DNA of 58,520 nucleotides. Origin: Fonticula alba ATCC 38817 (lineage: Eukaryota; Protista; Nucleariida). The notes beneath the pieces are model-generated. The model searched no databases and was not told the DNA's origin. It saw nothing but the letters and a program-made list of their open reading frames with translations. A program made the translations under genes and the position numbers. Below, piece by piece: positions 11,600 through 58,520 of this stretch. Every line of letters begins with the position of its first letter. The first letter of the stretch is position 1. The stretch lies in assembly GCA_000388065.2 (NCBI GenBank), contig KB932203.1; one strand, 5' to 3'.

Positions 11600-14500
11600 T
11601 CAGTGCTGCTGTCCGGCGATGTAGTCCTCCAGCAGAGACTCGAAAGGCTCGAACAGGCGGTCCAGCCAGGCCAGGGTGTCGGGATTCATGGCCTTGCGGT
11701 TGGTAGGCTCCTCCGAGTGGCTGGCCACCACGCGATTGCCCTCGACAAAGTTGAGCTTCCGGCGGAAGATCCAGTCGTCCCACTTGCCGGTCTGCGGGGC
11801 CTGGGCGACGATGGCCGACCGGGGTCCCCGCGAGATGGCGATGTCCTCCGCACCCGCAGGAGCATCCGCCTGGTCCTCGGGCGTGGTGTGATCGTCACCC
11901 CCGGCCGGGCCGTCGGGCAGCTGGCCCCCGGTCGAGGGGAAGGAGCTCCGGCGCTCGAGCCCAATGAAGTCGGTAATGCTGTCGAGGGCGGTGTCGACAT
12001 TGTCGAAGAGCTCTTCACTGCGAACGACGAGGATCTGCTCGGCCGGGAACTCCTTGCGCATGTTGCTGGGTTTTTTTTTTTTGCCCCCGCCCGCCGTCAA
12101 GCATGGGTACGTGTGTCAGCGGAAAGCCGAGAGGGCGAGGGGACGAGAGAGAGAGAAAGAGGGAGCGAGGCAGGGGGCGGGGACGAGGGGGCGCGCGGGA
12201 AGGAGCGCCCCGGAGGGCCCCATCCCGTGGGACCACACGCACTGGATCTGCGCGATGTAGATCGACCGGAGGATCAGCTGCAGGGCCCAGGGGGACACTT
12301 GGAGATCTGGAAGTCCGCGAGTGCGCGCGCGCGCGCGTGTGTCACATATGTCTCTGTCTGTCAGTAACCCGGAGAGGGGGGCGGGGGGGGGGGGCGGCGG
12401 ATGGCGGCGAGCGGGGGCCATCATGACCCGAGGATCGCGCAGCCATGCCGGCAGCAAGATGCATGTGTGCTTGGGCGTGCGGCCCACGTACCGGCCGCCT
12501 CTGTGGGGAGGAGTAAGCGCACGCGCATGGACAGGCCCCGCATGGTGAGAGAGCGCGTGGATAGAGGTGGTGATTGTCGGCACGCGCGGCAACGGGCGCG
12601 GCAGTGGGCACAGGCAAGTGAGGTTAGCACCAGCCAGCAGTCGGAACAGCGGCTGCCCCATGCCTGGGAGGGCGAGGGCCGCCACTGGCACTTTCCCCTC
12701 CCCCCTCCTGCCACCGAGCGGGAACTCCCCCACACATGGTGGCGAGCAGCCGGGTCAGGCATGCCCTCCCCTTGGCGCCGTTGCCCGGCCTGCGCTGGGC
12801 AGATGCCGCGCAGGGCACGCCTCCCCCGCCCCTTCCTCCACCGCGCATGGTGGCGGGGATGAATGCCCACCTGTGACGGCCACGTACCGGCGAGGATGGC
12901 CGTCTGGTGGCAGGCATAGATCCGGTCATAGGCCTCGAGGTAGGCGCGACCGCCCATGGTGCTGGCCATGTCCTGGCCGTAGAGCTCCTCGGCCACGGAA
13001 TTCTGGCACTTGACGATGACCGCATGCTCGCGGGCCAGGAGGGTCTCGAAGGCGGGGAACACCGGGGCCAAGGGGCGGCGGTCGCCCTGGCGCGTGGCGG
13101 CCTGCCGGTGCACCGACCGCGAAGCATCGCCCGGGCGCGTGAGAATCTTCTGTCAGTGGGTTTTTTCCCCCCATGCAAGGCCATCTTCGTGTGTGAGCAA
13201 CAGGTCGGCCAGCAGCAAGCACGCGAGTCAAGGTCCCCGGCAGGGCCCTCTCGAGCCGGGCCGGGCCGGGCCGGGCCGGGCCGGGCGGCCCACCCCCGGC
13301 CACCCCTCTGCACCGGCGGCGCGGGGGCTCTGCACGTCGCAAGGGCAAAGCACAGCAGCAGATGGGCATACACACGCACCGGCGGAGCAGCCCGGACCTC
13401 GGCGATGGGCAAGCCTTGGCGGTCGGCATCCGACATGGCCGGCAGGTCGATCACGGCGAGGGCCTCATCCCGGCGGAAGCGCCGCTTCGGGGGCTTCTCC
13501 TGGCTGTTCTTGCGGCTGCGCCGGGCCAATTGGTACATGTGGTTCTTCTGGGCGTGGTGGTAGTGGGAGTAGGCACGCTCGGCCGGGTCGCGGACCAGGG
13601 CGATAAGCTGGAGCCCCTCCCCCCGTGTGCAGGAGGCCCGGCGGCAGGGAACCCCGCGGCATGTGATGCACCGGGCGTCGGGGCATGGCCAAGGGCAGGC
13701 GCACGCCCGGGGCCGAGACAAGGTCCGGGACCGGGGGGGGGGGGGGGGGCAGGCGGGGGTAGGAGGCAAAAGCAGCGGTCAGGCCGAGGGCTGGGCAGGA
13801 GCGGGGCGGGCGGCGCGCGTGGCGGCTGGCATGGCGAAGCCCGACGCACCTTGACATCGGGCAAGACGGCGCGAATGCGCGCCGGGACCTCCGGGCGGTA
13901 CATGTACCCGGGGGTGGCCTCGCCGGTGACATAGCCGACGGTCTTCTCGCGGCCATGCTGGGCATCGTGCAGCAGGGTGGCCTCATCCGGCTGGCAGGGG
14001 AAGAACTTCTCATAGCGCTGGCGGACTTCCTGCAGCTGGGCCGGGGTCATTTGGTGGATGTCCGCCGGCTTGGCCGGCGAGCCGTCCCACATGATGGCGC
14101 GGCCCACCTCCTCGGTGATGAACTGCCCGGTGGCCGGGTTGATGGCCGACTCGCCGGAGGGCGGCCGGAGGCCCTGGTGCAGCCGGTGCCCCAGGCCGCC
14201 GAGGCGCGGCCAGTGCCGGGCCGAGTCGAAGAAGCGCAGCTCCTTGGTGCGCAGGGCGCTGCCCGGGGTGAGGGCCGACTCGCCGGTGGCCTCGGCCTCG
14301 GTGGCGGCCTGGTACATGGGGTCGGAGGTTTGCCAGGTGGGCAGGCGGCCGGCGGCCGGGCGGTCGCCGGCATGGGGCTCATCGGTGCCGGGGCCGGCTG
14401 CTTCGGCCAGAGCCGGGCTGCCGCTGCCGGGGGCGCGCCGCGACCCGGGGCCACCCCCGAAGAAGGGGAAGGTCGGGCGCGAGGGCTTCGGGATGACGGC

Positions 14501-15592
14501 CGTCAGGCCGAAGGGCAGGCGCAAGACATAGAAATGCGGCTCCGGCTCCGGGTCCGGGACCGGGTCCACCAGCTCGCCCATGCCGTCCGGGCCGTCGTCC
14601 TCGTCGTCCACGGTGCCGGCCTCGAGCGGCGACGCAGGCAGGCCGCCCTGGCCCGGGTCCGGGCTGGCGTCCAGATCCAGGCTGAAGTGCGGCTCGACGG
14701 CCGGGCGGATGTGCGGCCGGCCGCCGGGCTCCTGCTGATGCATGGTGATGGTTTCCACCTGGCCATCCTCCGGGGTGATGGCCGGCAGGTGGTCGCCGCC
14801 GGGGCCGGCGGCTCCGTGGGGGTTCGGCAGGCCGATGATTTGCGGATGCGTGCGCAGGTAGGCATAGAGGCTGGTGGTGCCGGCCTTCTGGGCCCCGACC
14901 ACGATGAAGGACGGCCGCATTCGGGGGCAGTTGGCCGCCGGCCGCCGCGGGGGCCCGGTGCCGGAGTAGCCCGGCCGCCGGGGCGGCGGCCTGGTGTGGC
15001 CGGTGGCCGGCCGCTGGCCGGCCTTGCCCGAGGGCTGGAAGCTGTTGCTGGCGCCGATGAGGGCCGCCCCGGCCGCGAGGGCCAGCACCAAGACCAGGGT
15101 CGCCGCGGCGATGGCCACCTTCGAGCGAGTGGAGCACCGGCTGCCGGGCCCGGCGCCGGGGCCTCCATGAGCCCCGGCCCCCGGCAGGAGGCCCAGCGAA
15201 TCGTCATCACCATCGCCGGTGTCGGCTCCGCCGCCGCCGCCGGCCAGGGCCCCACGGGCCAGGGCCTTCTCCGCGTCGAGCAGGGAATTGGCATCGGACC
15301 CGGCAGGGTCGCCGCCCATCGGGGCCGCACCGCCGGCTTCCATGTCCACCGAGGCCAGGGAGCCCATGGAGCTGCGGCCGGAGATGGGCAGATCGTCCGT
15401 GCTGTCGGCCGAGTCGTCGGCCGGCAGACCCAGCGTGTCGACTCGGACCATGACCGCCGAGGGGCCTGGCAGGTGGCCGGGTGCCGGGCTCAGCGGCTGC
15501 GACTGGTCGCCGCTGGCGTAGTCCGACCGATCGTGGTGATCACCCAGCAGCGGCTGGCCGAGGTGATCGTCGGAGCGTGTCCGAGGCGACAT
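11600..15592 (-). CDS. Type II membrane PAPS-dependent sulfotransferase (heparan sulfate 3-O-sulfotransferase / NDST sulfotransferase-domain-like), 5 exons, ~914 aa
   Basis: Exons 15592-13850, 13607-13398, 13149-12888, 12306-12243, 12065-11600 join in phase (2745 nt). 5'-PSB PSFIVVGAQKAGTTSLYAYLRTHPQI; KELRFFD; GEATPGYMY; 3'-PB LIALVRDPAERAYSHY; ILRSIYIAQIHNMRKEFPAEQILVVRSEELF; C-terminal MNPDTLAWLDRLFEPF. One hydrophobic segment KVAIAAATLVLVLALAAGAALIGA precedes the catalytic domain. Confidence 0.86.
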
Positions 15593-16996
15593 GCCTGCGT
15601 GCTGCGACGCCTGAGCGGGCGGGCAAAGCCAGGGGAAGAGGGGGAGGGCGGGCCGGGCGGAGGGGTATGATGGTGCCTGTGTGGCTCCGTGCGTGCGCGT
15701 GTGTGTGTACGAGCGCGTGCGTGTGTGGGTGTGTGTGGGTGTGCGTGCGTGCGCGGGTGCCGGCCGGCGGGATCGCGGGCTTTGCGGGCGGGAGGGCGCA
15801 AGACAGGCACGAGGCTACGCAGCAAGGGGGGCGACCGCGCGAGTGGGCAGCTCGGGATGCATGCGCGACAAGGGGACGGGATACCGGGCGACAGGGGGGA
15901 ATGCGCGAGAGGGGAGGAGAGGTTTATGGGCATCGGCTCGAGGCGACCGCATGGCTGGCTGGGGCCGCATAAAAAGCCCGCGATCCCGGTTGGCCGGTGC
16001 CGACGCGCGTGCACGCATGCACGCAGGCACCGGCGGCCGAGCGCCGTGCCCAGCCTGGCGCCGGGGCTGGCCCCGCCGCCGGTGCCTCCAGGGCCGTTTG
16101 GTCCCCGGCCGGCAAGCCCGATCGTGGGCGTGCTCGTGGGCATGTGGACCGGGCCTGGGGCCACTTGCGCCGATCGTGCCCGCGCCGATGTAGGGCTCTG
16201 CCTGCGCCGCGGCAGGGCGGGACGGGGCCTAGGGCGGGCACCGTGTTAAGGAGGCCCGATGCCGGTGGAGCTCGGCCCCGGGCCGCCGCGTGTCGGGGTG
16301 CTCCCGGGCAACGGCCGCCTGGACCCACCGGCCCATGGTGTCTCGGGTGGGCCGCGGCCGTGAGGGCGGTCTTTTGCTGTGGGAGGAGTGCCCGCGCACC
16401 GGCGACAATCCCCTATCTACGATAGGATGCCGGGCCTGCCCCCAGGCCTCGCTCGACCGGGTATCACCCCGCTGTTAGGGCGATGATACTCCCCGTTGAT
16501 TTGTTTGGTATGGCCGGGTGTGCGGCCGGGCGGTCCTCCCCAGGCCGGCCCGCCAACTAAAGGCCCCCGCGCCCCTCCCCCTGCACGCCTCTCGGCCCTG
16601 TTCGGGGCCGCTCGACCGGCTGGGCCTTGCGCGCCCCGGTGTCTCGAGCCCCGGCCGGAGCACCCTTCAACTTTGGCAGGTCCCCCCCCCCTCCCCTGCC
16701 CGGCCTCACCGCCGCAAATGCACCGGTACATGAACATACACATCCTGGGGCATGGGCCCGAGCATGGAGGGGCACGGGCACACGGGCTGGGCTTTCGCTG
16801 GCGTGCTCATGAATTCCGTCGATCACCGTGGAAAGCCGCCCGATTACAGGTGCGGCCGGAGGGGGCGCGAGCGGGGGCCAATCCAGCTCCCATCACCGTG
16901 CTATCGGCGGCGGGACATTCGGAAGTTAAGGACCGCGCGGCTCCTGCCGGCCCGACGCAAAGTGCCGATGGCGGCGACGGCTCCGGGGGGGGGGGG

Positions 16997-29337: not shown

Positions 29338-32321
29338 ATGTCGCCGGAGTGCTCTCCCCGGCGCGGGTCGACCGACGGCGGCTGGGCCTACCCGTCGGGG
29401 GCGGCCGCGCCACCATCGGCCACGCCTTCGGCCGGGCCCGGCGCCGGCATGGCCGCCCAAGCCAGCTCGCCTGGGCCGTCACTCGTCCGGGCCGCCCCGC
29501 CGCCACCGCTCCTGATTACCCCCAACTCGGGGGTCGAGGCGCCGGATGCCCCGGGGCTCGGGGCGGAGTCGCAGCACCTGCTCCAGGCCCACGCCCAGCA
29601 CCTGGGCCAGGGCCCGGGCCCCGGCGGCCCCGGCGCCCTCCGTGGCTGGCGCCAGCCCGTGGGCCCGGGGGGGTTCTGCGCCCCCGGCACCGATGGCACC
29701 CAGCCGCCGGGAGCCGGCGCCCCGGCGCCCACCCTGGCCGCCTTGCACCTGGGTGGCACCAACTTCCCCTCCTTTTCGGCCCTGGCCTCGCCGATCGACG
29801 CCAGCATCACCCCGGCCGCCACGCCCACTGCCCAGTCGGCCTCGACCCCGCAGCTGGGGGCCCTGTCCGGCACAAGTCGCCGGTCCAGCCTGGCCATTGG
29901 GGCCGGGCCCCATGGTGGTGGGGTCGGCCTCAGCACCCCGGGCGATCCGCTGGTGGCAGCGGCGGCCGCTGCTGCCGCCGCGGCCGCCGGGGCCTCGACC
30001 ACCGTTGCCGGCACCGCCTGCGTCTCGCCGTCGCCCTCGCTGACAGCCAGCGACAGTGGCGAGCTGCTGGCCATCGGCCAGCATCATCATCATCCCCATG
30101 CCCACCCCCACGGCCACCAGCACCATCACGCCCTCCTGGCGCCGGCGCCGCAGCACCAGCAGCAGCACCAGCAATCGCAGTCGCAATCGTACGCCGTGCC
30201 CAATGGCGGGTACTTCGGGCCCGGCTTGGTGGCCGCCACCACGCCGACGTCCATGCATGCAGCCACCGGCAGCGGGCACCTGGGGCACTGCCTCGGCGCC
30301 GCGGCCGGGGTGGCCGCCGGCAGCGGCAGCTCGGACTCCATGCTGCACCTGATCGACAACTTCCACAGCACGGCCCAGGCCCAGGCCCAGGCCCAGGCCC
30401 AGGCCCAGCAGCGTCACATCCAGGCACTGCTACTGCAGCAGGCCCAGCAGCAGGCCCAGCAGCCGTTGACGCCACTGCTGCCCCCGTCGGCCGGGGGGGT
30501 GGCCCCCACGGCGGCCGCCCTCGCTCCGCCCCAGCCCACCGGGCCGACCTTTGTCCTGGAGGATGTGTCCACCTGCGCCGCCGCGCTGGAGGAAGTGCGT
30601 GCCCTGCGGCAGCAGCAGCAGCAGCACTTCTCCGGCAAGACCGCCGGGCCGGTGTCGCCCCGGGCCGGCGGCGCGCCGAAGCTGGCCCCGGAGCTATGGC
30701 TGCATGTTTTCGGCTTCCTGGACCCGAGCACCCTGGCGTGCTACTGTGCCTCGGTGTCGCGTGCCTGGCGGGTGTTGGTGTTTCGGTGTGTGCGCGAGCG
30801 CGAGCCGGCCCACCACGAGGCCTGCATGCTGGCCTATGCCCACGCGACGCCGGTCAGCCTGGAGCACGTGTGCCGGCAGATTGACGCTCGGCTGCGGCTG
30901 ACCTACCCGGTGCCGGACTTCAGCGGTGGGCTGATGCATGCGGCGGCCGGGCGCGTGAGCGGCGTGTTGCCGGCTAGCCCGCGGCCGGGTGCCCCGGGCG
31001 GGGCGCCGGGCACCGGGCCGCAGGCCGGTCGCCCGGCCCCCGGCGGCCAGGCCGTCAGCCCCAATGACGGGGCCGCCTCCCTGGCGCGCATTGTGGCCAC
31101 CAGCAGCCCAGGCGGCCGGCCGGGTGGCGGATTGCCGTCGTCGTCGTCGTCGTCGTCGTCGGCCGCGGCCGCGGCCGTTGTGCCTGCGTCGGCCGGGCGG
31201 ACGCTGTCCACGGCGGCCCCGTCGCAGCCGCAGCCGCAGCCGCAGCCCGCCGGCGATGGCACGCACACGGCCGGCAGCGATGACGATGCCACCATGGCCG
31301 ACTCGCCGAACTCGCCGCTGCTCAGTGTCACCACTTCCCTCGGATCGGGGGATGACTCCTTCCGTCGGAGCGTGGCCGTGCGCCTGGCCGGTGGCGGCCG
31401 GCACGAGGCCCCCGGGTCGCCTGGGGCCGACCCGCACGCCGGCACGGCCCCCGGCGCCGGGACCACCAGCCCCTCGGGCGGCCAGCCGGCCGGCGGCAGC
31501 AACACCGCCTCCTCGCTGCTGAATGGCTTCTTCCGGCGGAGCTCGGCCGCGGCCCCGGCGCAACCGGCCGCCGATCCGGCCGCCACGACGGCCACCGGCG
31601 CTTCGGCCAGCCGGCCGGCCGGGTCCGTCTCGGCCCTCGGGGGCGGGGTGCCCGTCACCCCGTCCGGGTCGGTCCCGAGCGCGGCGGCCTCCTTCTCGGC
31701 GGCCTCGACCCCGGTGGCCAGCTTCTTCCCGGACTCGCTGGCATCGCTCTTCGGCCAAACCCCGACCACACCGACCACCGGGCCGATGGCGGCGGGCAGT
31801 AGTGTGGCGCAGAACGCCCCGCCGGGCTCCGGCCCGGCCGTGGCCGCCGCCGCCGCCGCTGCCGCCGCCGCCGCCACCCCCACCAGCCCCTCGTCCAATG
31901 TCACCCTCCCGGTGGTGGTCATCGGAGAGAAGGGCCGGGGCAAGTCCACGGTCCTGGCGCACTGGGTGCAGCACCACTGCCGGCTGACGGCCAACACCAT
32001 CGTCCTGTACCACTCGCTGGCGGCCTCGGCCTCGGCCGCCGACCCGATTGCCATGATCTACCGGCTCATGACGCAGCTCCGCGCCTATGGCCAGGTGGAG
32101 GAGGACGTCCCGGCCAGCTGGATGCAGATGGTCCAGAAGTTCCCCCAGTGGCTGCAGGAGGTCGGCAGCCGGCGCATGGTGGTCGTCGTGGTGGATGGCC
32201 TGGACCTGATCGAGACCAAGGCCGACTCCGAGCTGGACCTCTCCTGGCTGCCGACCTTCATCCCGCCCAATGTCAAGGTATGTGTGTTTTCGGGTGGGGG
32301 TCTCCTTCCCCTGCTCTTTCT

Positions 32322-32355
<34 letters not shown>

Positions 32356-35300
32356 TGTCCTCTCTCTTGCCCTCTCTCTTTCGCCCTCTCCTTTTTGTAC
32401 ACCACACACACACACACACACACACACACGCGTGCGCGCGTCGCTGCCCACGGTGCTGACATCACGTCCCTGCTGCGCGCTGCCTTGCCCTCCCGCTGTC
32501 GCTTGGCCGCCCCTATTGACGCGGCACCTGGCAGATGATCTACTCGGTTTGCTCCTCGGCCCGGGAGATCACCGCCGAGCTGATCGACCGCCGCCAGTGG
32601 CAGCCCTATCGCCTGGTGGAGCTGACCCTCTCCGAGCGGCAGAACATCATCGACCGCCTGACTCGGCGGTATGCCAAGATCTCGCCGCAGGCGGCCCTCG
32701 CCGTGCGCGGCCTTGGCCCAGAGCAGCGTGAAAAGATCGCCACCTCGCCCATGGTGCGTGCAGCGCGGCCTGTCGTGGGCCGGTCCCGGCCATTGTGCTT
32801 CCCCTTTTGCCTGCTGTCTTTGCGCCACCACGTTTGCACGCACCCCCCCCCCCCCCTCCCCCGCCCCCCTATCAGGGATGATGTGGCCGGTGCCTGACAG
32901 CGTTTCTCCTTATCTCCCCCCTCGGGGCAACAAAACCCCGGCATCCGCCGCTTCGCATTGCCCGTCCGGTCCTGCCGCCCCTTCCCACACACACGAACAC
33001 CCATGGCAGGCCCACAACCCTCTGTACCTGACGGTGCTGCTGCAGTACCTCGTCCGCCTGCGCACCCGGCTGAGCATGGATGAGCGCATCAACTTCTACA
33101 CCAGCGCCCGGAGCAGTGCGTTCCTTCCCCTACCGCCATAACCCGCTCCACCTCGGCTGCTGCCGGGCACCTGGCTTGGGGGGGGGGGGGGGGGGGGGCG
33201 CATGTGTCGCCCTGTGGGGCTGGCCCTCCGCGAGTGATCAGCATGGCGACACACCCCGTGCCTCGCCCCGCAACTGGCCACTCCCCACTGTTGCTTCCTG
33301 TTTGGCAGTCACTCACACCCAGCCTCTCTCTCTCTCTCTCTCTCTCTCGCTCTCTCTCCCCCTGTCCCTCTCGCTGTCTCGCTCTTTCGCGCCGTGCCGC
33401 TCCGCACATGTGAACGGTCTCGTGCCAGCTCCCGAGCTTTATGACCGGGTACTTGAGGCCCTGGAGATGGACTTCAACACGCCGCCCACCCTGGTCCATG
33501 ATTTCCTCACCTGCCTGGCCTCCTCCCGGCAGGGTCTCTCCGAGAAGGAGGTCGAGGAGGTACAAGCACCACACCCCATTCCCCCCCGTCCATGAGCGCG
33601 CGCCGCCTCCCCCCCCCCCCTTCCTCCCCCCTGGGGGCGAAGGTCCGGCGGGGGGGAAATCTTTCTGCACTTTCTCCGCTCCTTTTGCTGACTCCCCCTC
33701 TCCCCCCCCCCTTGCCCATCTTCCGCTGGGGCGCTTTGGCCTCGGGCCCGGGCAGATCCTCAACCTGGACCCGCCCTCCTGGCACGACTTCTTCCGCGCG
33801 CTGGCCCCATCTCTGCTGGTCCGCTGCGGGCTGGTGTCCTACTTCCATGAAGGCCTGCGCGATGCGGCCCGGCGCCGGTACCTCAGCACCGAGGAGGCGC
33901 AGAAGCGTGCCTATGACAAGCTCATCGACTACTTCACATCCAAGATGAATGGCGGGTCGGTGCCGGCCCCTGGGGCCGGTGTCGGGGCCCCCGGCGGCCC
34001 CAACGGGGACTTCCTCGACGCCGCTGGCGATTCCACCGACGACGACATGGACACCGATGAGCAGCAGCAGCAGCAGCGGCAGAATGCTGGCAATGGCATG
34101 GCCGACGTGGCCACCGGGCCGCAGGATGTGGACACCGAGGATGAGCTGAGCCCGGAGCTGCGCCAGCGCCGGCGGGCCGAAATGGCTGGCCGGCGGGCCG
34201 ATGCCGGCGCCCGCGGGGCGAGCTCCTCCCGCGCCGGCACGTCGGCACCCGGCGCCCATGCCGAGGACGCCGACATGCGCGACGCGCGGTCCTTCGACAA
34301 TTCCCTGCTGGCCGAGGCCACGCGCGTGGTGGCCGGTCCGGCTCACGTCAGCCGGAGCATCGGCCGCGTGGGCCTGGTTCCCACCTCGCGGGCCTCCTCC
34401 ACCGGGGAGGGGGCCAGTGCTGCCGGGCGCCGGGGGCTGGCCAGCGCCAGCGCCACCACCGGCTCCGGCAGCGGGCCCAACGAGTCCACCTCGTCGGGGG
34501 CCTCCTCCACCGGCGCCGGCAGCCCGGCCAGCCCGCGGCTCAGTCTGGTCATCCCGTCCACCGGCCGGCCGGGAGCACCGGGCGGGCAGGCCGCCCGCAC
34601 GGCCACCGGCGCGGCCGCTGCCGCCGCCGCCGCCGCCGCCACCACCACCACCACCACCACCACCACCACCACCGATGTGGACATGGTGTCTCCGGATGAG
34701 CCGGACGCCCCGCCGCCGCTGCAAGCGCCGGATCCTATTCTGGCGCACGCGGCGCACACCGGGACCGATGGTGTGACGCAGCGCGTGGTCGACGAGCTCC
34801 CCTGGCTGCTGGAGCGCACCCGCGACAAGCCCCGGCTCAAGAGCTGCATCGCCAACATCCGCATGTTCGACAAGGTGCGACCCCACACCACCGGCAGGGA
34901 ATGGGCGCGCGGGCCGGGCGCGAGCAGCGGCACAGGGCGGATGGCCCGATGGCCCTGCCTTTGGGTCGGTGTGGGCATGTGCCTCTGAGAGACGACGCGA
35001 GGGGGGCGGGGTGAGGGCGGCCCGGCTGTGCGCACACATCCAGCTGCTCCACAAGTCCGAGGTCCACCAGTGCTTGAGAGAGTAATAATTGAAGCACGCG
35101 CGCGCGTCTCCGGCTCCTGTTCCCATGCAAGACAGTGGAGGGGAGCCGGGCGGCGCGCAGCTGTCTCGGACGCAGGAGAGCGAGCCAGGAGGCGGGGGGG
35201 GGGGGGAGGGCGAGGCAGGTGGCGGCAGCGGGGAGGGGGCGGGGGGCAGGACAGCTTGCGCGGCACCCGCGTGTCGCAGGCACTGCTGCCCTCTCCACAG

Positions 35301-38300
35301 GGGAGGGGGGCGGGGAGCCGGGCCGCAGCCACTGCCGGGCCCTTTCGCATGCCGTGCGGCTGCCTCGCGCGCACGCGCGCAAGCCCACACACACACACAC
35401 ACCACGCAGGGCCGAAGTGTTGAGCCCATGCCGGCATCCCTGCTGCGCCCCTCCGGCCTCCGTCTCTGACCCGGCTCGCGATGACGCCTCATCTCCTGCT
35501 GCAGCTCTTCCACAAAGAGCGCAAGTACGACCTCTTCCGGTACTGGGTGACCACCGAGGCATCGGGCGACGAGATTGCCCGGCTGTACGAGTCGAACCTG
35601 CGCGCCTTCCAGGCGGCCAACCCCGGGTCCATGCGCGAGGTGGCCCGGCTGGCTCACAAGATCGGGGAGTATGTTCGCGACGGCGGGCACTACAACGAGG
35701 GTGCGTCAGGGGTCCTTCGGCCGGGGCACTCTCACGGCTCGCCGACGCGAAGGGGGACAGGGGGGGGGGGGGGAGGGGAGACGACTGCGCTGTGTGTGCG
35801 TCCGTGCGTCCGGCAATGTGTTGTCCTAACTGCTCCTGCTCCCACTGCTCCACGGTGCGCCTTTCGGCGCGGGGGCTTCGGCCGCCGGTCGGCATCCGGC
35901 ATGTTCCCCCATGTCCACAGCCATCCGCTTCTTCAACATGGCCTGGCGCATCAAGCGCGCGGAATTCGGCGAGCACAGCGTCGAGGTGGCCACCACCATG
36001 AACGAGCTGGGCCGGCTGTACTTCCGCCTTGGCCGCCATGATGAAACCCTGTACATGTGGCGCAAGTCGCTGGAGATCCGCGAGATGACCCGCCAGGGGC
36101 AGGACGATCATGACATCGCCATTTCCCTCAACAACCTGGCTCTCATCTACGAGAAGATGGGCCGCTGGCAGGAGGCCGAACCGACCTACCTCCGGGGTGC
36201 GTCTACCGCGCCCGCCCTGCCCCCCCCCNNNNNNNNNNNNNNNNNNNNNNNNNNNNNNNNNNNNNNNNNNNNNNNNNNNNNNNNNNNNNNNNNNNNNNNN
36301 NNNNNNNNNNNNNNNNNNNNNNNNNNNNNNNNNNNNNNNNNNNNNNNNNNNNNNNNNNNNNNNNNNNNNNNNNNNNNNNNNNNNNNNNNNNNNNNNNNNN
36401 NNNNNNNNNNNNNNNNNNNNNNNNNNNNNNNNNNNNNNNNNNNNNNNNNNNNNNNNNNNNNNNNNNNNNNNNNNNNNNNNNNNNNNNNNNNNNNNNNNNN
36501 NNNNNNNNNNNNNNNNNNNNNNNNNNNNNNNNNNNNNNNNNNNNNNNNNNNNNNNNNNNNNNNNNNNNNNNNNNNNNNNNNNNNNNNNNNNNNNNNNNNN
36601 NNNNNNNNNNNNNNNNNNNNNNNNNNNNNNNNNNNNNNNNNNNNNNNNNNNNNNNNNNNNNNNNNNNNNNNNNNNNNNNNNNNNNNNCCCCCCCTCCGCC
36701 CCGCCCCCCCTTCTGCGGCGCCGGCGCCGGCCACCGCTTGCGCCATGCGAAACAGCCCTGGAAATCTATCAGGCGGTGTCGGGTCCCGACCACCCGGACG
36801 TGGCCATCACCTACCACAACCTGGGCCTGCTGTACAGCAACTACGACGCGCGCTTCGCCGAGGCCGAGGCCATGTATTTGCGGGCACTGGCCATCAAGGA
36901 GCGCCACTACGGGCGCGACCACAATGAGCTGGCCATGACCCTCAACAACCTGGGGCTGGTGTTCAGCAAGAGCGCCCAGTTCAGCCGCGCGGCCGAGCTC
37001 TATCGCAAGGCCATCGAAATCCGCGAGGTGATTTTCGGCCCGGAGCACCCGGACATCGCCCTCTTCTACTTCAACCTCGGGGTGTGCTACGGCAAGATGA
37101 GCCGCCTGGACCGGGCCCGGCCCTGCCTCTTCCGCGCGCTGCGCATCCGCCAGCGGGTGTATGGCCCGCAGCACCAGAGCACCCTGGTGGTCCGGTCGTG
37201 GATCCACTACTTCGGCTGGTATGTCGATGAGGACTCGCTGGCGGCCGAGGCGGCCGGCACCTCGTCCGCCCTCGGCACCGGCGGCCCCGGCACCGGCGGC
37301 GGCGGCGGCAACGATCAAACCACCCGCCGCCGGGCGACCCTCAATGCTGCGGCCGCCACCCGGCCCACCGCTACCGCCACCACGCAGCAGTCGCAGTCGG
37401 CCGCCACGACGCCTTCCACCACGGCCGCCGCCCCGGCCAGCGGGATGCCGAATGCCGGGTCGGCCACCAGCTCCGTGGCCGCCGGCGCCGGGGGGCCTGC
37501 CACCGGCTCCGGCTCCGGCTCCGGCTCCCGGGTCGTCGCGGCCAGTGCCACCGCCAGCAGCAGCCCCGCCGGGGGGGGGCCCCAGGCACCCGGGGCCTCG
37601 CGTGTGGTTCTCACCGCGGCCGGGTCCCCGGCCACTCCGGCCGACGTCGCAGCCGCCACAACCTCCTCCTCGTCCTTGACCTCTCCCTCGCACCAGATCC
37701 CCGCGTCAACCGCCGGGTCCAGTGTCAGCTCGATCTTCCCCGGGCTGCGGCGCACCTCGCCAACTGCCACCAGCCCGTCCATCGGCAACAGCGGCAGCGG
37801 CAGCAGCAGCAGCAGCAGCAGCGGCAGCGGCAGCAGCAACAGTGCCACCCAGCCGGGCCACAGGGCGGCCTTCGCCCCGTACCCGGCCGCCGGATCGAGC
37901 AGCGCCCACGGGGGGGCCCCGCTGACCACGCAGCAGCAGCCGCCGTCTCAGGCAAATGCCCGGTCGGCCCCAACGACGACGCACCTGGCCGGTGGCGGCG
38001 TCGCGGCCATGGTCCTGGACCCGCCGACTGGCGGCGACGCCCTCGGCGGGCCGGTCACCTCGGCCTCCAGCGGTAGCCGGCTGTCCGGCCTCTGGTCTGC
38101 AGCCACTCGCTCATCCATTGTCAGCAGCATCACCAGTGCCAGCAGCAGCAGCGCCTCCAACGGGCGCTCTGGCGGCAGTAGCAGCACCTCGCCTCTGAAC
38201 GCCACGGCCACCGAGCAGCAGCAGCAGCAGCAACAGCTCCATCTCCAAGCCCAGCAGGCTACGCTATTGCAGCAGCAGCAGCAGCAGCAGCATGCGGCGA

Positions 38301-38521
38301 CCGCCGCTGGTCGCCAGCCCGGAGCCGGGTCCGGCAGCAGCAACCACAGCAGCCCCTTCAGTAGAACGTCCTCCGTGGACCCGGCCTTCAGCGGTGCCGG
38401 TGGTGGGTCCTCGGGCCACACGGCCTCGGCGGCTTCCTCGGCCGCCACCGCCGACGACCGGCGGTCCTCCACACGGCGCCCGTCCTTCTCGCGCTCGGCG
38501 CGCAGCTCCCGCTCCCAGTAA
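29338..38521 (+). CDS. F-box + NPHP3/TEP1-like STAND (NACHT-like) NTPase + TPR-repeat protein, at least 8 exons, ~2250 aa
   Basis: Exons 29338-32277, 32535-32753, 33010-33115, 33429-33559, 33756-34874, 35505-35700, 35921-36196, 36756-38521 join in phase (6753 nt); first in-frame ATG used, true start uncertain. F-box PKLAPELWLHVFGFLDPSTLACYCASVSRAWRVLV; Walker A VVIGEKGRGKST; Walker B VVVVVDGLD; SWLPTFIPPNVKMIYS; NPLYLTVLLQYL; SRQGLSEKE; YFHEGLRDAARRRYL; RVVDELPWLL; about six 42-aa TPRs of the HPDVAITYHNLGLLY...EAEAMYLRALAIKE type. Confidence 0.85.
36229..36687. other. Assembly gap inside an intron of the TPR-coding region
   Basis: N run flanked by poly-C, between donor 36197 and acceptor 36755. 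Confidence 0.99.
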
Positions 38522-39963: not shown

Positions 39964-41820
39964 TCACGAGCGCCAGATGTTGCCGCCCGAGAACTCGTCG
40001 ATGACACGCAGCAGGTCGGTCGGCGGGCGGATGATCTGCACCACGAGCGGCGACGCGTCATACAGGCCGCGCAGGAAGGCCGCCACATCCTCATCCGACA
40101 GGGCGGCCCCGGTGTTGGGCAGCGACCGGAAAACGCACAGCAGCGGCTCCAGGGCCTGGTGGCCAGGCGGGCTGTCGGTCACCGCGCGCACCAGGCGCAG
40201 AACTCGCATGGCCAGCTCGCGCTGCTTGGCCTCCGGCATGCTGTCGAACACCCGGTCCAGGGTGTTCAGGTAGGCCTGCGAGGCGGCCACCGCCGGCGAG
40301 GTGGCCACCGCCGCCTTGCCCTTCTTCGGGGAGGCCATGGTGGCCAGGTCGGCCTTGACGCGCTCCAGCGACATGTTCGCCAGCACATGGAGCAGGTCCT
40401 CGGCCGGGAAGGAATCCAGCAGGCCGGTCGTGCCGTTGGCCATGGCCTCGGTCAGGGCCGCGCGAATGGCCTCGGCCTGGGCCGGAGGGTTAGCCAGCTC
40501 GGCCACATACTGGGCCCAGGTGTCGCTGGAGTTGGTCAGGCGGTTCATCTCCCGAACCAGGAAGTTGGCCATCGGCCGCGGCATCAGACCGCGAACCTGG
40601 TAAAGGCTCAGCAGCAGGTCGGCCGCGTGCATGTTCCGCTCCATGCCCGGCGACTTGGGGTCCAGGTCGACGGTGGTGCGCAGCGGCGCCGGCGGCGCAC
40701 CCCCCAGGCCAATGGTCGAGGAGGACGCATCCTCCGGCCGGTGGAGGAACTCAAAGCGCTCGATGGCCGTCTGCATGTCGGACTTCGACAGCGGCGGGGC
40801 GATGGTGGCCAGGCCACGGGTGAAGCGCTCCAGCGCGCGCTCATACATCTGCACCGCGATGCCGGCCCCGGAGGAGGACACCGGCTCCGGCATCTCCATG
40901 TCCAGGCGCTGGACCAGCTTCTGCGCCACCGGGTACAGGGCGTCCAGCAGGGTCTGCGAAATGGCACGATGATGGGCCGAGGCGGCCAGCCGATCCGACT
41001 CCGGCAGGACCACCGGCCGGGTGTACGCCTGCAGGTTGCCAAAGGCGTGGGTATTCCCCAGGCCGTCCGGCACCGACTGGTAGAAGTCCCGGCGGTTGTC
41101 ATAGAGCAGCTCCCGCGCGGCGGTGTTCTTCGGCCACAGGATCCCAAAGAGATCGGTCTCGAAGTTGGTGGCCAGGGCATTGCCCACATGCGTGTGCAGA
41201 CCCGGCTTGGGCTTGTACATGGCCGACACATAGGTGTTGTACGCGGGGAAGGTGAAGGGCGAGCGCATGACACTCCGGGAGAACTTAGACGCCGGCGGCA
41301 GGGCGAAGCGCTCGAAGTTCGGCCGCATCTGCCCCTCCACATGGGGGAGGTCCAGCTCGGAAGAGTGGTCGACATTCATGTCGAGCTGTGTTGTGGCCGG
41401 CGGTGGCGAGGGGCGAGGGGCGAGGGGCGAGGGGCGAGGGGCGAGGGGCGAGGGGCGAGGGGCGAGGGGGGAGGGGGACAAAAGAAGACGGTGCAGGTGT
41501 GAGTAATCTCATGATGGGGACGCAGGCAGAAGGGATGGCACGAAGGGGCCATGCAGGAGAGGGGGGGGAGGGCAGAGGGAGAGAGCATACGCACCGGGAC
41601 AAAGAACCCATCAACGATGCTGTCAGTGACCTCCTCGACAGTGGCGAAGTTCCACTTGGGAGACTGGTCCTTGTCGATGAGAGCCGCGCGGACACCCTCG
41701 ACGAAGTCGCCCTTGGGGTGCTGTTACACAGCAAGAGAGGAAGGAGGCAGGGGGGAGAGGGGGGAAGAAAGAGAAAAGGGAGACGAAAGAGAAAAGGGAG
41801 ACGAAAGAGAAAAGGGAGAC

Positions 41821-47761: not shown

Positions 47762-50700
47762 CTATGACTGTACAGCACGCGACATCTCCATCAGCTCCTC
47801 CTCGTCCGGCGGGTGGTCGATGGTCCGCTGCAGCAGCAGCAGCGACTGAAGAATGGACCGAGCCGTGGCGGCGGCCGATGAGGGGGGATTCGAGCTCGGC
47901 TCGGGGCCAGCCAGCGAGATGGCCAGCGCGTCGGCCAGTGCCCCGGAGCCCGGCCCTCCTCCGGCGGCCCCTGAACCGCTGAGCAGCTGGAGAACCGAGT
48001 GCGAGGACCCCGATTGATGGTGGCTCGGCGGCTGGCCGGAGGCACCGCCACCGGCGGTGCCACTGCCCCCCGTCGACCCGAGCAGGGGAGCCGGCCCGCT
48101 GGTGCTCGGGGAGCCGGCCGCCGGGAGCGAGGCAACCGACCCGCTGGCTGAGCCGGGCGCGCTGCCCGGCGCGCTGCCCGTCTCGGACACCGCATCCACA
48201 TGGTCCAGGTAGGACTTCAACCGGGCCATGGAGAGATCCCCGGCGGCGGCGAAGCGGGCCAGGCGCACATGCCGCTCCAGGATCGACGTGATGTACCGGT
48301 ACTTGGCGATGTGAACCAGGCCGCTGAAGTCCCGCGGAACTGAGGGGACACGCTCCAGGACATACAACACCTCTCGGAGCATGATCATCGGGATGGGCAC
48401 TGCACCCACCAGGGCAACTGGCGCCGGCGCCGGCTGCTGGGACTGCGGTTGCTGCTGCTGCTGCTGCTGCTGGGACTGTGGTTGCTGCTGCTGTGACTGC
48501 TGCTGCTGAGATTGCGGCTGCTGCAGAGTGGCCGGCTGCTGGCCCGACTGCTTGGCATCGACATCGGCCCCGGTGGCCGGGCGACGGTCGGGGCGTGGCG
48601 GGGGCACCGGGCGCCCGGCTGACGACTGTAGCCCACGCAGCACGGGGATCGGCGCGCTGGCCAGGCGCTCGATGCGCGCGCGGTACGTGCGCATGTTGTT
48701 GCGCGGCTCGAAGAACTTGCCCAATTTGGAGATTTCGGCCATGTCGCTCTTGCTCAAGGACGACCAGACGGACTTCAGGCGCAGGATCGGCGGCGAGAAG
48801 AGCCCATTGTACAGGGCAAAGGCCCCGAGGAAGTCGTGCATGTCTCGCGCCAGGCGGATGATCTTCAGCACCTTGCGGAAGATGTCCTTCCGCGCGCGGG
48901 CAGTCTCCCCGGAGCACACCTCGAAGCCCACCCACTGGGTGAGCTGGTGCTCTCGGCGGAAGAGCCGGACCACGGACTCCGGCTGCTTCATAATCGCCCC
49001 GGCCGGGGGGTCGTTCTTGAAGAACCGCTGCGATTGCCCGGACCATGACATGGGCCAGTGGAGGTGGGAGAGTCAGTGGCTGCGCCAAAGCCGCCCGCCA
49101 CACGAGCGGGCGCACAATAATCCCTCCCCGGGGGGGGGGGGGGGGGCCGCGGCGCCCATGCGGACATGCACATGCTCCACATGCAAAAAAAAAAAACAAC
49201 CACCAGCCCACACCACAGTGCGTACCTGGTTCGAGGAGGCCACCGCATAGGTGAACCAATCAATCGGCTGGACCTGCGCCGCGAGGTAGGCATTATGGCA
49301 GCTGATGAACAGGGCCGCGGTTTGGGGGCTCAGGCCAACCAAGCCGGAGGACAGCGCCCGGTCGCTGAAGCTGCCACTCGGCGAGGTGGCCAGAGTCGGC
49401 GCCGAGCCCGAGCTGCTGGACGACCGCGAGGAACCGACGCTCCGCAGGGAGGCGCTCCGCGACAGGGGACGATCGGCCCCGGCACTGGCCGCTTGGATGG
49501 TCAACAGCTCGATACGGCGGCCTCGCACCGGCCCCGGCTCGATGCGCCGCAGGGCCTGGTACACGCAATTGTGGAATGCCTGCCGCAAGAGGGCATACTC
49601 CCCGTACAGGGAGTAGTGGCCTTGGATCATGAAGTCCCGCAGGAGCGACAGCAGCAGACGATCCTGCTCGAACTCCACCCACTGGAAACGCAGCCACCGA
49701 GAGAGGACATTGAGGACCCTGCGGCAGTCCCGAGGGGGCCAGGCGGTGGCGGCGGCGGGGGATCGAATGACAAGGGGAGCGGACGCAAAGATGGCCAAAG
49801 TGACGTCAATAGAAGGCACGGGGAGGGGAGGGCGATGAGCAAGAAGCCGCAACAGGAGGGGGAGGGGGGGGGAGGGGGAGGCATCAGCAGGCCGCCTCGC
49901 ATGACACACGTACTTGCGTCGAAGCGAGTCGGACACCTCCTCGAAGTAGGCGATGAGATCATCCGACAGGCCGAGCAGGCGCGGCGCCTCGGCTGTGGTC
50001 AGGGCCCGAGCGTTGAAGCGCGACATCAGCACCGAGAAAAGGTCCACGTGTGACATGTACTGACTGTGCGTCAGCAGGACACTGTCCACCAGATCGGCGG
50101 TGTCCTCGAAGTCCAGCAGCGGCGGGTCATTCGAGGCGGACATGAACCAGGTGGAGGCCGCGCGCGTCAGCCGGCCGGAACCGGCCCCACTCCCGGAGCC
50201 AGCATCATCGGCGGCGCCCGGGCCCAGGCCCGAGCCACTCAGGCGCCGGTCGTACGGCGCGTCATCGGCCAGGCGCTCGGCCAGATGCCCAATCGAACAG
50301 GCCACCACCTCCAGCCGGCCGCGCACCAGCTCCAAAATCAGGATATTCTCCCCGGTGGGCACATGCCGAACGAGGATGGCCTCGGCCGGGACCTGGCACT
50401 TGGACCCGGCCTCCGGATCGGCCGCCGAGCCGGCCTGCAGGCCGACCGCCGGCACGCCAAGGGTCAGGGACAGGCGCTTCAGCGTGGCTGGCGTGGCCAG
50501 CTCCTCGTGGCCATACCGCCCGGCAATCGTGCGCAGGATGCGCATGTTCCGGTCGAAGTGCCGCCCGGCTTCCGGGTGCTTCGTGGTCTTGCGCCCGGGG
50601 GTGGAGGCTCCGGCTGGCCCGGCCACAGAGCCAACATCCCCGTCGGGGCCGTCGCTGGTGGCCGCCACCGAGGGGTAAACCATGCGTCGGGTGTTCCTGC

Positions 50701-53700
50701 GACACGGGAGGATGGTGGATGGTTGGAAAAGCGGAAAGGGGGCCAGGGGGGGGNNNNNNNNNNNNNNNNNNNNNNNNNNNNNNNNNNNNNNNNGGGGGGG
50801 GGAGAGAGAGAGAGATGGAGGAACCGCACATGTGAGAAGGGGACACGAGAGGGGCGAGAGGAGGTTGGAGAAGACATAGAAGGGGAGGGGCAGGGGGAAA
50901 GGAACCAGGGCAGAGAGGCAAAGACCGAGGGACGCCCACGGAAAGACACAGAGAGCCCAGGAGGGGTGGGGGGGGGGGGGGAGGACACGCACGATTGCGA
51001 CACGGTAATCAGCGGAGACAGGGCCCCGGTTGTGAAAGCCTCAAGACTATCCGCCCCGCCGGGGCCGGAGTCACCATCGGCCACCGGTGGAAGGGCCGGC
51101 CGCACCGGGGTCAGTGTGCCGGCAAAGGCCCCGCCAGCCAGGAGAGCCCGATTGCCCGTGGACGGGTGCCGGGCCGGCGGCTGGGCCGGGGCAATGGCAT
51201 CCGACGAGGCCAGCGACGGGATATACACCAGGGAATAGTCATCGCGCAGGAGCTTGCGCGGGGCCAGCAGGGCCGCATTGTTGACCGACATCATGTCCGA
51301 GAAGAGGCTGGCCGCGGGGAGGGCCGTGGCGGCCCCCCCGGCGGTGGGGGCCTCGCGAGAGGTGGATTCCTCCGACGCGGTCCCGGGGTCGCCGGACGGC
51401 GAGTCCGACTCCCCGGAGGTGTCGCTGCTGCAGGGGGCCGTGGTGGCGGCGGCCAGGAGATCCCCCCCTCCGGCAACCAGCGGCTCGGACAGACCACCCT
51501 CACCCATGGCCAGCGGGTCCCCGGGCGACGGGGAAGCCGGCCGGTCCGAGTCGAAGCCCGACGAGTCGGACATGCTGCCGGTGCTGTCGGCGCCGTCCAC
51601 ATCGACGGCCATATCCCCCTCCGAGTTGGAGGCCTCATCATTCAGAGGGGCGGGGAAGCGCCGGGGCGCCGGGGGTTTGGCGGGTGGGCCATCGCGAGGC
51701 CCGGCCCCCGGGGCCCCGGCCGATGGCACCGGCAACAGCACATGCTCCGAGGTACTCCGATCAAAGAGCAGGGACATCGGCCGCACGCCGGGGGTGGACC
51801 CGCCCTCGCGCCCGGCCCCGGAGGTGGCGGACGCCGCGAAGCGCGCGAAGAACGGCGACAGGGTGATGGTGGTGTCCTCGTCCGAGTCATCGCCCATCGG
51901 CTGCTCCAGAACCGTGTCCAGCTGGTTGCTGGCCGGCACAAAGAGCGACCCACGCCGCAGGGAGGACGTCGACGAGGCGGCCGAGACCGAGCCCGACGAC
52001 GGCGGCGAGTAGGGGGCCGCAAACAGCGGCCCGGCCGCCGCGGCCGCCGCCACCAGCGACGAGTTCGACGAACAGGCCGACAGCCCGGACGCCGGGGACA
52101 GGGAGGACGAGGAGGAAGAGCAAGAGGAGGACGATCCCCGGGCCGAGGTGAGGCTCCCCAGCGAGGGGGACAGATTCACGGGCAGAGCCCCGGCACCCGG
52201 GGCCAGAGGCCGCTGCTGCGGCAGGAGCCCCTCGCTGACGGTGGCCCGACGCCCGGCGGCAAAGCGCCCCCCGGCCGTGGCCAAGTCCCCGAGCACGTCT
52301 TCCCCCTCCTCGCTAGGGGTGGAAGTGACGTCCTGCGAGTGGGATCGCCCGGCCCCGGGGCCGGCGGCCGCCTCATCATCGGCATCCCCATCGTAGGCCT
52401 CATCCTGCTGGCTGGGGGCGACCGCGAAGGCACGCAGCCCAGCCACCGGGGCCAGGGCGAATGTTTGGGGACCGAGCAGCCCCGGGAGGGGCGGCCCACC
52501 GGCCGGCCGCTCAGACGGCGCATTGATGCCCCTGCCCAGCAGGAGCTGGAAAATAACTTCATCGGTGTTGGAAGAGTGTGGGCGGCCACTTGGACCGAGA
52601 TCGGACGGGGGGGGTGCCGTCGGCGGGGCGGGGATGGCGATGGCCGTGGTCGCCCGGGCGTCGGTGGCGGCCGCAGTCGCCGCCGGCGCCGGGAGTGACA
52701 AACGAGCCGTGGTGGCGGACAGATCCGCGGCCGCCGCCGCCGCCGCCGCCGCCGCCGTCGACTCGGTGGCGCTTGCCGGCGATGTGGGCATCGAAACCGC
52801 GCGAGTGATGCGCGCCTGACGCCGGGCCGGGCGCGAGGTAACCACCGAGCTCATGGCCACAGGGGCGCCACCGGCGGCTCGGGTGACTTCCTCGCCGGCG
52901 CCCTCGCCAGCGCTGAGAAAGGCCTCCAGCAAGTCGAACAGGTGCTCCCCATCGAGGTCCGGATGCTCCAGCTGGAGATCCTGCTCATAGAGGGACGGCT
53001 CATAGTCGCGCCGGGTGGCGCTGGTGCTGCCGTCCACCAGGGGGATGGTCTCGAAGGAGGCACGCCCGGAGGGAGGCCCGGAGGATGGCCCATCGCCATC
53101 CAGCGAGCAGGTGCTGTAGGTCAGGCTGTCATCATCCAGCAGGTCACTCCCGCCATCCGGGCGCAAATCCACCAACATCGGCCCCGAGGGCAGGGTCCAG
53201 GCGGGCGGGGCGCCGATGACGCTGTTCCGAGACCCGCCGGCCGCCCCGAGGGGCCCATTCCCCATCGAGCCGGATGCCAGGTCGCTCAAGCCGCCGTGGA
53301 AGGATCCGGCGCGATTGGGCGACCGCGGGGGCGCCGGACCACCAGGCCCCCCCTCATCGAAGGCATACGACCCGGTGGCCGAGTAGAGCGACGCGGGGAA
53401 GGCCGGGCCCGTGGGCTCCGGCTTGCCGACCAGTTGACGGACCTTGCGCACGAACCGGTGCCGCGAGGAGGCCGATGGCGAAGGGGCCCCCAGGCCGGCC
53501 GGGTTCAGCAGCGACGCCGCGGCCGCTCCATCGCCACCCTTGCTGTTGCTGCTGCCGCTGGTGCTGCTGCCGCTGCCGCTGCCGCTGCTGCTGCTGCTGC
53601 TGCTCTGGCTGGATCCGGAGAAGGGCAGGTGGTCGATGGACCGGGACTTGTACTGTGGTGAGGGGGGCGGGCTTTCGGCCGAGAGGGTGGGCTCGCTGCC

Positions 53701-58489: not shown

Positions 58490-58520
<31 letters not shown>

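Follow-up and report, generated by a model that had tools for sequence, protein, structure and literature searches.

An F-box in the effector position of a nephrocystin-3-like STAND NTPase–TPR protein of Fonticula alba: a candidate nucleotide-gated SCF receptor

Introduction

Most F-box proteins are receptors of Skp1–Cul1–F-box (SCF) ubiquitin ligases, and the known outputs of STAND and NLR-like NTPases are death folds, nucleases, NADases, proteases and pore-formers. Here we analyse a gene of the nucleariid protist Fonticula alba (ATCC 38817) in which an F-box, a STAND P-loop NTPase, an NPHP3-type helical region and a TPR domain are encoded together. The gene lies in a 58,520-nt stretch of contig KB932203.1 (assembly GCA_000388065.2), hereafter the window, and an earlier note on this DNA, made from the letters alone, had read it as an NLR-like protein with an F-box in the effector slot and knew of no described protein with this order of domains. 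Full-text literature searches agree with the last point, as no paper with this domain order was found in them.

A first group of described eukaryotic NTPases shares the core of the window protein. NPHP3, TTC41, NWD1/2 and TEP1 have the same core order of an NPHP3_N/NACHT NTPase, an NPHP3 helical region and NPHP3-type TPRs. However, the N-terminus of NPHP3 carries a myristoyl-glycine, a coiled coil and a degenerate DUF4062/NIR domain (PMC7202064; bioRxiv 10.64898/2026.09.04.749371), whereas the window protein has an F-box in this place, and its TPR domain ends in six units against at least 11 in NPHP3 (PMC7202064). In animals, NPHP3 forms part of the scaffold of the inversin compartment (PMC7202064). 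Judged by its sequence, the window protein is not an orthologue of NPHP3. Furthermore, F. alba presumably has no cilia, which makes a ciliary role in an inversin compartment unlikely.

A second group is formed by the prokaryotic and eukaryotic DUF4062(NIR)–STAND–TPR proteins, including the NIR-type Avs2. In Avs proteins, as in NLR-like proteins of eukaryotes, DUF4062/NIR is reported to be an NADase effector at the N-terminus (bioRxiv 10.64898/2026.09.04.749371). These share with the window protein the helix that precedes the P-loop, the Walker motifs, the helical domain and TPR_NPHP3-like repeats, but the window protein has an F-box in place of the NADase, its TPRs are conserved and not diversified, and it belongs to a set of eukaryotic, intron-bearing genes. 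In fungal NLRs, too, an effector is combined with a NACHT or NB-ARC domain and with ANK, WD or TPR repeats; these repeats vary greatly and the genes have expanded (Dyrka et al. 2014, PMC4986451). The term 'F-box' is absent from the text of that survey. The layout is shared, but in the window protein and its orthologues the repeats are the best conserved region and there is one gene copy per contig. The likeness to fungal NLRs drawn in the earlier note is a loose one, since the core is nephrocystin-3-like and falls outside the fungal NACHT/NB-ARC sets.

Canonical F-box proteins (FBXL, FBXW and FBXO) have in common with the window protein an N-proximal F-box of the pattern L..E[LI]...[IV]F..L....L.....V...W..L. 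They differ in that their substrate part is made of LRR, WD40 or Kelch domains and not of an NTPase with TPRs, and the window F-box has a one-residue insertion in helix 2–3 (TLACYCA versus TL-CRCA), with the proline shifted in several members of its family. Two systems already couple an F-box to an NTPase. FBH1 (FBXO18) is an F-box protein with a P-loop NTPase motor that works as an SCF ligase (PMC12946210, PMC2294136), but this motor, a UvrD-type SF1 helicase, works on DNA, whereas the window NTPase is a STAND switch with TPRs, and homology between the two proteins is limited to the F-box and the P-loop. In the cytoplasmic lattices of mouse oocytes an FBXW–SKP1 pair sits on an NLRP scaffold with its CUL1 face blocked (PMC13728194); there, NACHT and F-box/SKP1 are coupled in trans and in a CUL1-incompatible manner, whereas in the window both are in one polypeptide.

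Gene structure and coding evidence

We built an eight-exon model from the list of open reading frames (ORFs) and by direct reading of positions 32150–36800. The features of the gene are as follows, where GC3 is the G+C content of third codon positions and aa are amino acids.

29338–38521, + strand: whole coding region, 8 exons, 2,250 codons plus stop
29338–32277, 32535–32753, 33010–33115 and 33429–33559, + strand: exons 1–4 of the splice model
33756–34874, 35505–35700, 35921–36196 and 36756–38521, + strand: exons 5–8 of the splice model
29338–30681, + strand: N-terminal low-complexity region, aa 1–448, A/G/S/P/T/Q 69% (composition; no Pfam domain)
30682–30780, + strand: F-box, aa 449–481 (Pfam F-box-like and F-box; family profile against PDB)
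30781–30900, + strand: conserved helical extension with the pre-P-loop helix (REREPAHHEACML...), the opening part of the NTPase module (alignment with orthologues and DUF4062-type relatives)
30901–31905, + strand: low-complexity insert of ~335 aa between the pre-P-loop helices and NTPase strand 1, A/G/S/P/T/Q 76% (GC3 0.82–0.96)
31906–33947, + strand: STAND P-loop NTPase and NPHP3-type helical/winged-helix region, aa 857–1196, exons 1–5 (Pfam, orthology, structure)
31924–31947, + strand: Walker A, GEKGRGKS (sequence)
32179–32205, + strand: Walker B, VVVVVDGLD (sequence)
33948–34784, + strand: low-complexity insert of ~255–280 aa between the helical and TPR domains, within exon 5 (GC3 0.82–0.94)
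34785–37219, + strand: nephrocystin-3-type TPR domain, aa 1476–1817, exons 5–8 (Pfam; 70% identity to the orthologue L001)
36197–36755, + strand: intron 7, donor GTGCGT at 36197 and acceptor AG at 36754–36755, holding an assembly gap (36229–36687) between C-rich runs
37220–38521, + strand: C-terminal low-complexity tail of ~430 aa, S/A/G/T/P/Q 79%, and stop (GC3 0.78–0.92)

All seven junctions follow the GT-AG rule, GTGCGT is the donor of five of the seven introns, and the single stop is terminal. The predicted protein, of 2,250 aa, begins MSPECS and after splicing is collinear with an 856-aa orthologue, L001. This clean model supports the earlier proposal of one spliced ORF in which the F-box and the NTPase share an exon.

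The window has a G+C content of ~66–75% and holds many chance ORFs of 200–700 aa in other frames, and since such ORFs are abundant in GC-rich DNA, ORF length alone is no proof of a gene. In the coding frame GC3 is 0.78–0.98 across all exons, the low-complexity inserts included. It is 0.62–0.82 in the introns (0.62–0.73 in the six that are free of gaps, and 0.80–0.82 in the short C-rich sequences beside the gap) and 0.65 beyond the stop, and its rise at ~29305 agrees with the ATG at 29338. The F-box and the P-loop both lie in exon 1, with a GC3 of 0.82 or more throughout the sequence between them.

At the exon 7–exon 8 splice, which spans the assembly gap, WQEAEPTYLR is followed by ALEIYQAVSGPDHPDV (in a longer extract, ALEIYQAVSGPDHPDVAITYHNLGLLY), in frame and with the 42-aa TPR register kept. 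L001 carries the corresponding stretch, AEPTYKRALEIYKQVSGPEHPDV (also given as WQEAEPTYKRALEIYKQVSGPEHPDVAITYHNLGLLY), inside one uninterrupted exon, and in a second orthologous locus, L004, one tblastn segment spans the junction; the orthologues are continuous at this point and have no extra residues. Because the gap is intronic and the orthologues run on across the junction, no coding sequence is missing in the gap.

Two antisense ORFs, at 30906–32057 (- strand, 384 aa) and 29391–30083 (- strand, 231 aa), overlap exon 1 with a GC3 of 0.88–0.91. These were rejected as genes: sense and antisense third positions fall together, and the ORFs are mirror artefacts. Such mirror ORFs of GC3-rich genes are a trap for ORF-based annotation of this genome.

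The F-box

The core of the F-box, LAPELWLHVFGFLDPSTLACYCASVSRAWRVLV, lies where the earlier note had placed it (~30676–30790), and both Pfam models match it above their cut-offs. F-box-like (PF12937) scored 26.4 bits on exon 1 and 30.7 bits on the excised region (cut-off 24.3) and F-box (PF00646) 21.7 bits (cut-off 20.5), and both models are matched by all five family members. When the window F-box region was compared alone with PDB sequences, FBXL2 and KDM2B were matched weakly. A profile of five family F-boxes, however, matched 22 PDB sequences at E ≤ 1, all 22 of which are F-box proteins, the best being FBXL2 (5e-8), FBXL5 (2e-5), KDM2B (1e-4) and FBXW7 (4e-4).

Across five lineages ten F-box positions are invariant (L, E, L, L, F, L, C, V, W and L), while overall identity in this region is only 36–48%. 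Among the six lineages examined for it, the F-box proline is in its canonical place (LPSE) in the loci L007 and L011. In a structural model of an orthologue fragment of 335 aa, P0001, the F-box is modelled as three helices (101–108, 113–123 and 125–151) at a predicted local distance difference test (pLDDT) score of 71–77, and the third continues into the leading, pre-P-loop helix of the NTPase.

The NTPase, helical region and TPR domain

The Walker A motif coincides exactly with the position first given for it, and the Walker B motif (VVVVVDGLD) with the approximate one, ~32180–32205. Walker A GK[ST] is retained in all six lineages examined and Walker B hhhhDGL in L001, L007 and L011, and the Walker A lysine and Walker B aspartate are intact in every lineage examined. 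For the window, Pfam was run on pieces of exons, and orthologues served as the other source of domain scores. On exon 1 alone NACHT (23.0 bits, cut-off 26.7), NPHP3_N (15.4 bits, cut-off 24.8) and AAA_22 remain somewhat below their cut-offs because intron 1 cuts the domain, and there was no DUF4062 match in the Pfam scan of exon 1. The pre-P-loop helix aligns with KDRE.AQHETFML of the orthologues and with HE.FA.SR..YIGR of DUF4062-type relatives.

As foreseen in the earlier note, the NTPase is followed by STAND helical elements, which are of NPHP3 type, and by six 42-aa TPR units, which stand in exact register at the end of the TPR domain (aa 1551–1802). Pieces of TPR_NPHP3 were matched on exons 5, 6, 7 and 8, and exons 7 and 8 also matched TPR_12 (82.6 and 121.1 bits) and TPR_10 (54.9 and 104.8 bits).

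Compared with its orthologues, the window copy has the same core of ~760 aa and is lengthened to 2,250 aa only by its four low-complexity inserts. The orthologues have ~60–100 residues in place of the N-terminal 448 aa, and the ~335-aa insert is specific to the copy in this genome and absent from all of them. L001 has no insert between the helical and TPR domains, so that the blastp blocks 858–1199 and 1454–1822 adjoin in it, and its protein stops 21 residues past the last TPR.

Orthologues of the fused gene

With the F-box–Walker B segment as query, we searched 1.84 billion representative proteins exhaustively, in a library that did not hold the window's own protein. This gave four short proteins with an F-box and a P-loop in one ORF (P0001, P0002, P0003 and P0149), in which the F-box lies ~35–40 residues before the P-loop strand, together with the KDRE.AQHETFML helix. 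They represent four 50%-identity clusters among the 1.84 billion representatives, with no annotated full-length member. Their contigs are eukaryotic, with introns and with neighbours that include the DNA primase large subunit, PDCD7, LSM11, SepSecS and BRO1, and on them the gene carries on in the same orientation with helical and TPR exons of NPHP3 type. A further lineage (L011–L013) came from a pattern scan of JGI metagenomes. In tblastn comparisons L001, L004, L007 and L011 align collinearly along the entire core of the window protein. No synteny was seen between the window and the metagenomic loci outside the F-box–NTPase gene, and as no other gene is shared these loci represent separate genomes. 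Each of four independent contigs has one copy of the gene.

Splicing L001 by hand removed two introns of 132 and 66 nt (L001:9386–9517 and L001:10829–10894) and gave the 856-aa protein. Their donors, GTGCGT and GTGCGC, match the extended donor of the window gene (GTGCG). Both lengths are multiples of three and both introns contain an in-frame stop, which leads prokaryote-style gene callers to split the gene into three ORFs of the same frame. An altered genetic code, as an explanation of these in-frame stops, was rejected, as the stops lie in the 132- and 66-nt introns with GTGCG donors. The L001 protein compares with the window protein and with Pfam (score/cut-off in bits) as follows.

F-box block: 48% identity
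NTPase–helical block: 39% identity over 342 aa
TPR block: 70% identity over 370 aa
Pfam F-box models: F-box-like 32.6/24.3; F-box 26.7/20.5
Pfam core models: NACHT 37.2/26.7; NPHP3_N 29.4/24.8; NPHP3_hel 30.6/27.9; TPR_NPHP3 164/100

Likewise, P0001 matched AAA_16 at 39.1 bits (cut-off 32.6), and the Pfam scan gave no DUF4062 match in it. The TPR domain is the best conserved block, with 65–90% identity between lineages whose NTPases share 32–49%, whereas generic bacterial TPR_12 proteins are only 33–46% identical to the window TPR. TPRs as conserved as this between lineages suggest a single, constant partner and speak against an immune sensor that evolves fast.

A word-indexed search with the NTPase part of a 1,177-aa ORF gave 638 candidates, none significant, and one with the exon 8 TPR gave no F-box protein but was swamped by bacterial multi-TPR proteins and so is uninformative on the family. 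Foldseek comparison with AFDB fold clusters and the ESM Atlas, which cover cluster representatives only, returned matches to the NTPase and none covering both F-box and NTPase, a negative of little weight given that coverage. No PADLOC 2.0 defence family was matched, the only hits being weak, generic P-loop and TPR ones of at most 29 bits.

These data make the architecture, with F-box, NTPase, helical region and TPRs in one gene, near certain. The F-box–NTPase–TPR proteins are a small, conserved eukaryotic family of at least five lineages, the window included. The earlier note had considered that the architecture might prove to be a widespread, characterised family; a family does exist, but it is small and uncharacterised.

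On the contig that carries the P0002/P0151 orthologue, L004:7835–8641 (- strand) encodes SepSecS, a part of the selenocysteine machinery, and the L004 organism is thus predicted to use selenoproteins. The best named match of this SepSecS is that of Balamuthia mandrillaris (63%), with animals at 58–61%, and these identities are too flat to place L004 taxonomically. We take an organism with selenocysteine machinery to be unlikely to be a typical fungus.

Relatives of the core and origin of the fusion

We compared an AlphaFold2 model of the NTPase with other structures. Among Swiss-Prot models the closest by Foldseek were a Dictyostelium TPR protein, NPHP3, TTC41, NWD1/2 and TEP1, with human NPHP3 superposing at a root-mean-square deviation of 2.5 Å and 26% identity. 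Among solved structures Avs3 was the best match (Z 16.8), followed by ORC/Cdc6, plant resistosomes, MalT and Apaf-1. The closest sequences without an F-box (35–37% identity) are long, intron-less metagenomic proteins, one of them from a Methanosarcinaceae metagenome-assembled genome and one automatically named 'nephrocystin-3'.

DUF4062 was found upstream of the NTPase in all six of the nearest non-F-box relatives scanned. The AQHETF helix of the F-box family corresponds to the HE.FA.SR..YIGR helix of these DUF4062-type relatives (alignment A2), and this shared pre-P-loop helix marks the junction, so that the F-box replaces DUF4062 and its linker precisely. The earlier assignment of the F-box to the effector slot is upheld by these two results and, because the relatives carry DUF4062 at this place, rests on homology and not on analogy alone.

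In a tree of 87 NTPase segments, four F-box members among them, the F-box proteins form one clade (support 99/98) that branches from within prokaryotic DUF4062–NTPase–TPR proteins, and in it the L001 lineage is the sister of the window protein. A single clade indicates one fusion event, retained since, in which an F-box replaced the NADase effector.

Some relatives (P0020, P0034, P0076, P0134 and P0136) have an extra 200–1,250 residues before the DUF4062/NTPase unit, with DUF4062 at 200–286 in P0020 and at 418–527 in P0034. Further N-terminal modules thus seem to have been added in the DUF4062–NTPase family.

Proposed function and alternatives

The product of the gene described here can be seen as a STAND NTPase–TPR protein with a new effector or, just as well, as an F-box protein whose putative substrate module is of a new kind. 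We lean towards a reading in which the F-box would bind Skp1, so that the protein would be an SCF substrate receptor or adaptor gated by its NTPase and devoted to one conserved TPR partner, and we regard this as somewhat more likely than not. The F-box region would recruit Skp1 and hence Cul1–Rbx1, while the TPR domain would hold a single conserved endogenous partner. The STAND NTPase would behave like those of other STAND proteins, being closed with ADP and opening to self-associate with ATP, and its nucleotide state, possibly with self-association, would set when the TPR partner and the F-box/Skp1 end meet the ligase. FBH1 is a precedent for an SCF receptor whose activity is driven by nucleotide. 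Were this so, ubiquitin-ligase recruitment would join the outputs of STAND and NLR-like proteins, an effector swap from NADase to F-box would have taken place inside eukaryotes, and an SCF receptor with an NTP-dependent switch as its substrate module would amount to a nucleotide-gated ligase. The compact 856-aa orthologue, with Skp1 binding and ubiquitylation as clear biochemical read-outs, could then be a tractable stand-in for the NTPase module of the human ciliopathy protein NPHP3.

Several points weigh against this reading. The canonical F-box proline is shifted in three of the six lineages examined (LAPE, LMPE) and absent in one (LANE). The AlphaFold2 model of the isolated window F-box region is poor (pLDDT 57), and although its best Foldseek match is the F-box of FBXL2 in complex with SKP1, this covers 34 columns at 2.9 Å with a non-significant E of 1.1. 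Relatives in the family lack the arginine of the NACHT sensor-1 motif (STLPG), and to our knowledge neither NTP hydrolysis nor oligomerisation has ever been demonstrated for NPHP3-type modules. Three small RNA runs carrying the species label gave only spurious matches of 20–28 nt, at low-complexity spots and chimeric 'joints', which speak neither for nor against the gene model. Finally, F-box/Skp1 pairs can act outside SCF ligases (PMC13728194).

A more elaborate form of the proposal is a STAND 'signalosome', in which the TPR partner and ATP would open and oligomerise the NTPase and so cluster F-box/Skp1 into a multivalent, proximity-induced SCF E3 ligase, a process that may be likened to caspase activation on the apoptosome. 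We put this forward tentatively, as a possibility we would not expect to hold. If it did, this would be the first ubiquitin-ligase adaptor in an NLR-like effector slot and would offer a handle on the function of NPHP3-type NTPases.

The strongest rival to the SCF reading, and one that accords with the same data, is that the F-box binds Skp1 without Cul1. The protein would then be a structural or assembly adaptor whose NTPase–TPR part builds or regulates a scaffold, with no marking for degradation, in the manner of other Cul1-free F-box/Skp1 adaptors, namely Ctf13, Rcy1 and the RAVE complex. Its highly conserved TPR domain would suit a fixed structural partner as well as a substrate, and both the FBXW–SKP1 pair on the NLRP scaffold of oocyte lattices, with its blocked CUL1 face (PMC13728194), and animal NPHP3, as an inversin-compartment scaffold (PMC7202064), lend it weight. 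Nevertheless, nothing in the sequence speaks against Cul1 recruitment and F-box proteins are as a rule SCF receptors. We judge a Cul1-free role unlikely.

An innate-immune or allorecognition sensor of NLR/Avs type, in which the TPRs would detect a foreign molecule and the oligomer would trigger ubiquitin-dependent defence or death, is suggested by the tripartite effector–NOD–repeat layout, by the prokaryotic DUF4062–NTPase–TPR proteins of Avs type that are its nearest relatives, and by Avs3, the best solved structural relative, which is bound to phage terminase. However, the repeats are more conserved than the NTPase, contrary to the pattern in immune receptors that diversify, there is a single copy on each of the four independent contigs, and the family is both rare and without a PADLOC counterpart. 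This sensor is thus improbable, and the 'immune-like' option raised in the earlier note is disfavoured by the same observations.

It is also conceivable, though we give it little credence, that the F-box-like helices have lost Skp1 binding and serve as an N-terminal cap or autoinhibitory lid on an NPHP3-like switch or scaffold. The shifted or missing proline in four of six lineages, the continuity of F-box helix 3 with the pre-P-loop helix in P0001 and the low confidence of the isolated-domain model would all fit a lid, but they have to be set against ten invariant core positions in a region of low overall identity and against Pfam scores above cut-off in five of five members. Furthermore, KDM2B, which binds SKP1, also has an F-box without LP and yet is matched by the family profile. 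With an inert F-box, the fusion would be just another rearrangement of domains in a family noted for such changes.

Lastly, an artefact, in which an F-box gene and an NTPase–TPR gene were merged by a chance ORF or misjoined across the gap, might be suspected from the long spurious ORFs of GC-rich DNA, the N gap inside the gene and the want of a genuine transcript match in the three small RNA runs, but at the level of sequence it is refuted by orthologues in which the F-box precedes the P-loop strand in a single exon, together with the coding-like GC3 of the linker and a gap that is intronic and bridged by continuous orthologues.

Low-complexity DNA and other genes of the window

The window contains 65 G or C homopolymer runs of 10–31 nt (for example 8192–8216, 583–604, 33178–33198 and 58490–58520) and 12 assembly gaps. 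Gaps often directly adjoin such runs, as with G25 before the gap at 8217–8418, G22 after the gap at 548–582 and the C runs on both sides of the gap at 36229–36687, and the runs are probably the cause of the assembly breaks. Within the F-box–NTPase gene, runs of 10–21 nt occur in every intron except intron 1. There are also 21 dinucleotide tracts in the window, including (CT)n and (CA)n microsatellites of 8–13 units in introns 1, 3 and 5 (32330–32428, 33324–33347 and 35386–35401).

Three other long ORFs of high GC3, at 39967–41508 (- strand), 13454–15814 (- strand) and 51239–52009 (+ strand), had no Pfam match. The ORF at 47765–49072 (- strand) encodes a RasGEF domain (74.7 bits) and is probably one exon of a larger minus-strand gene.

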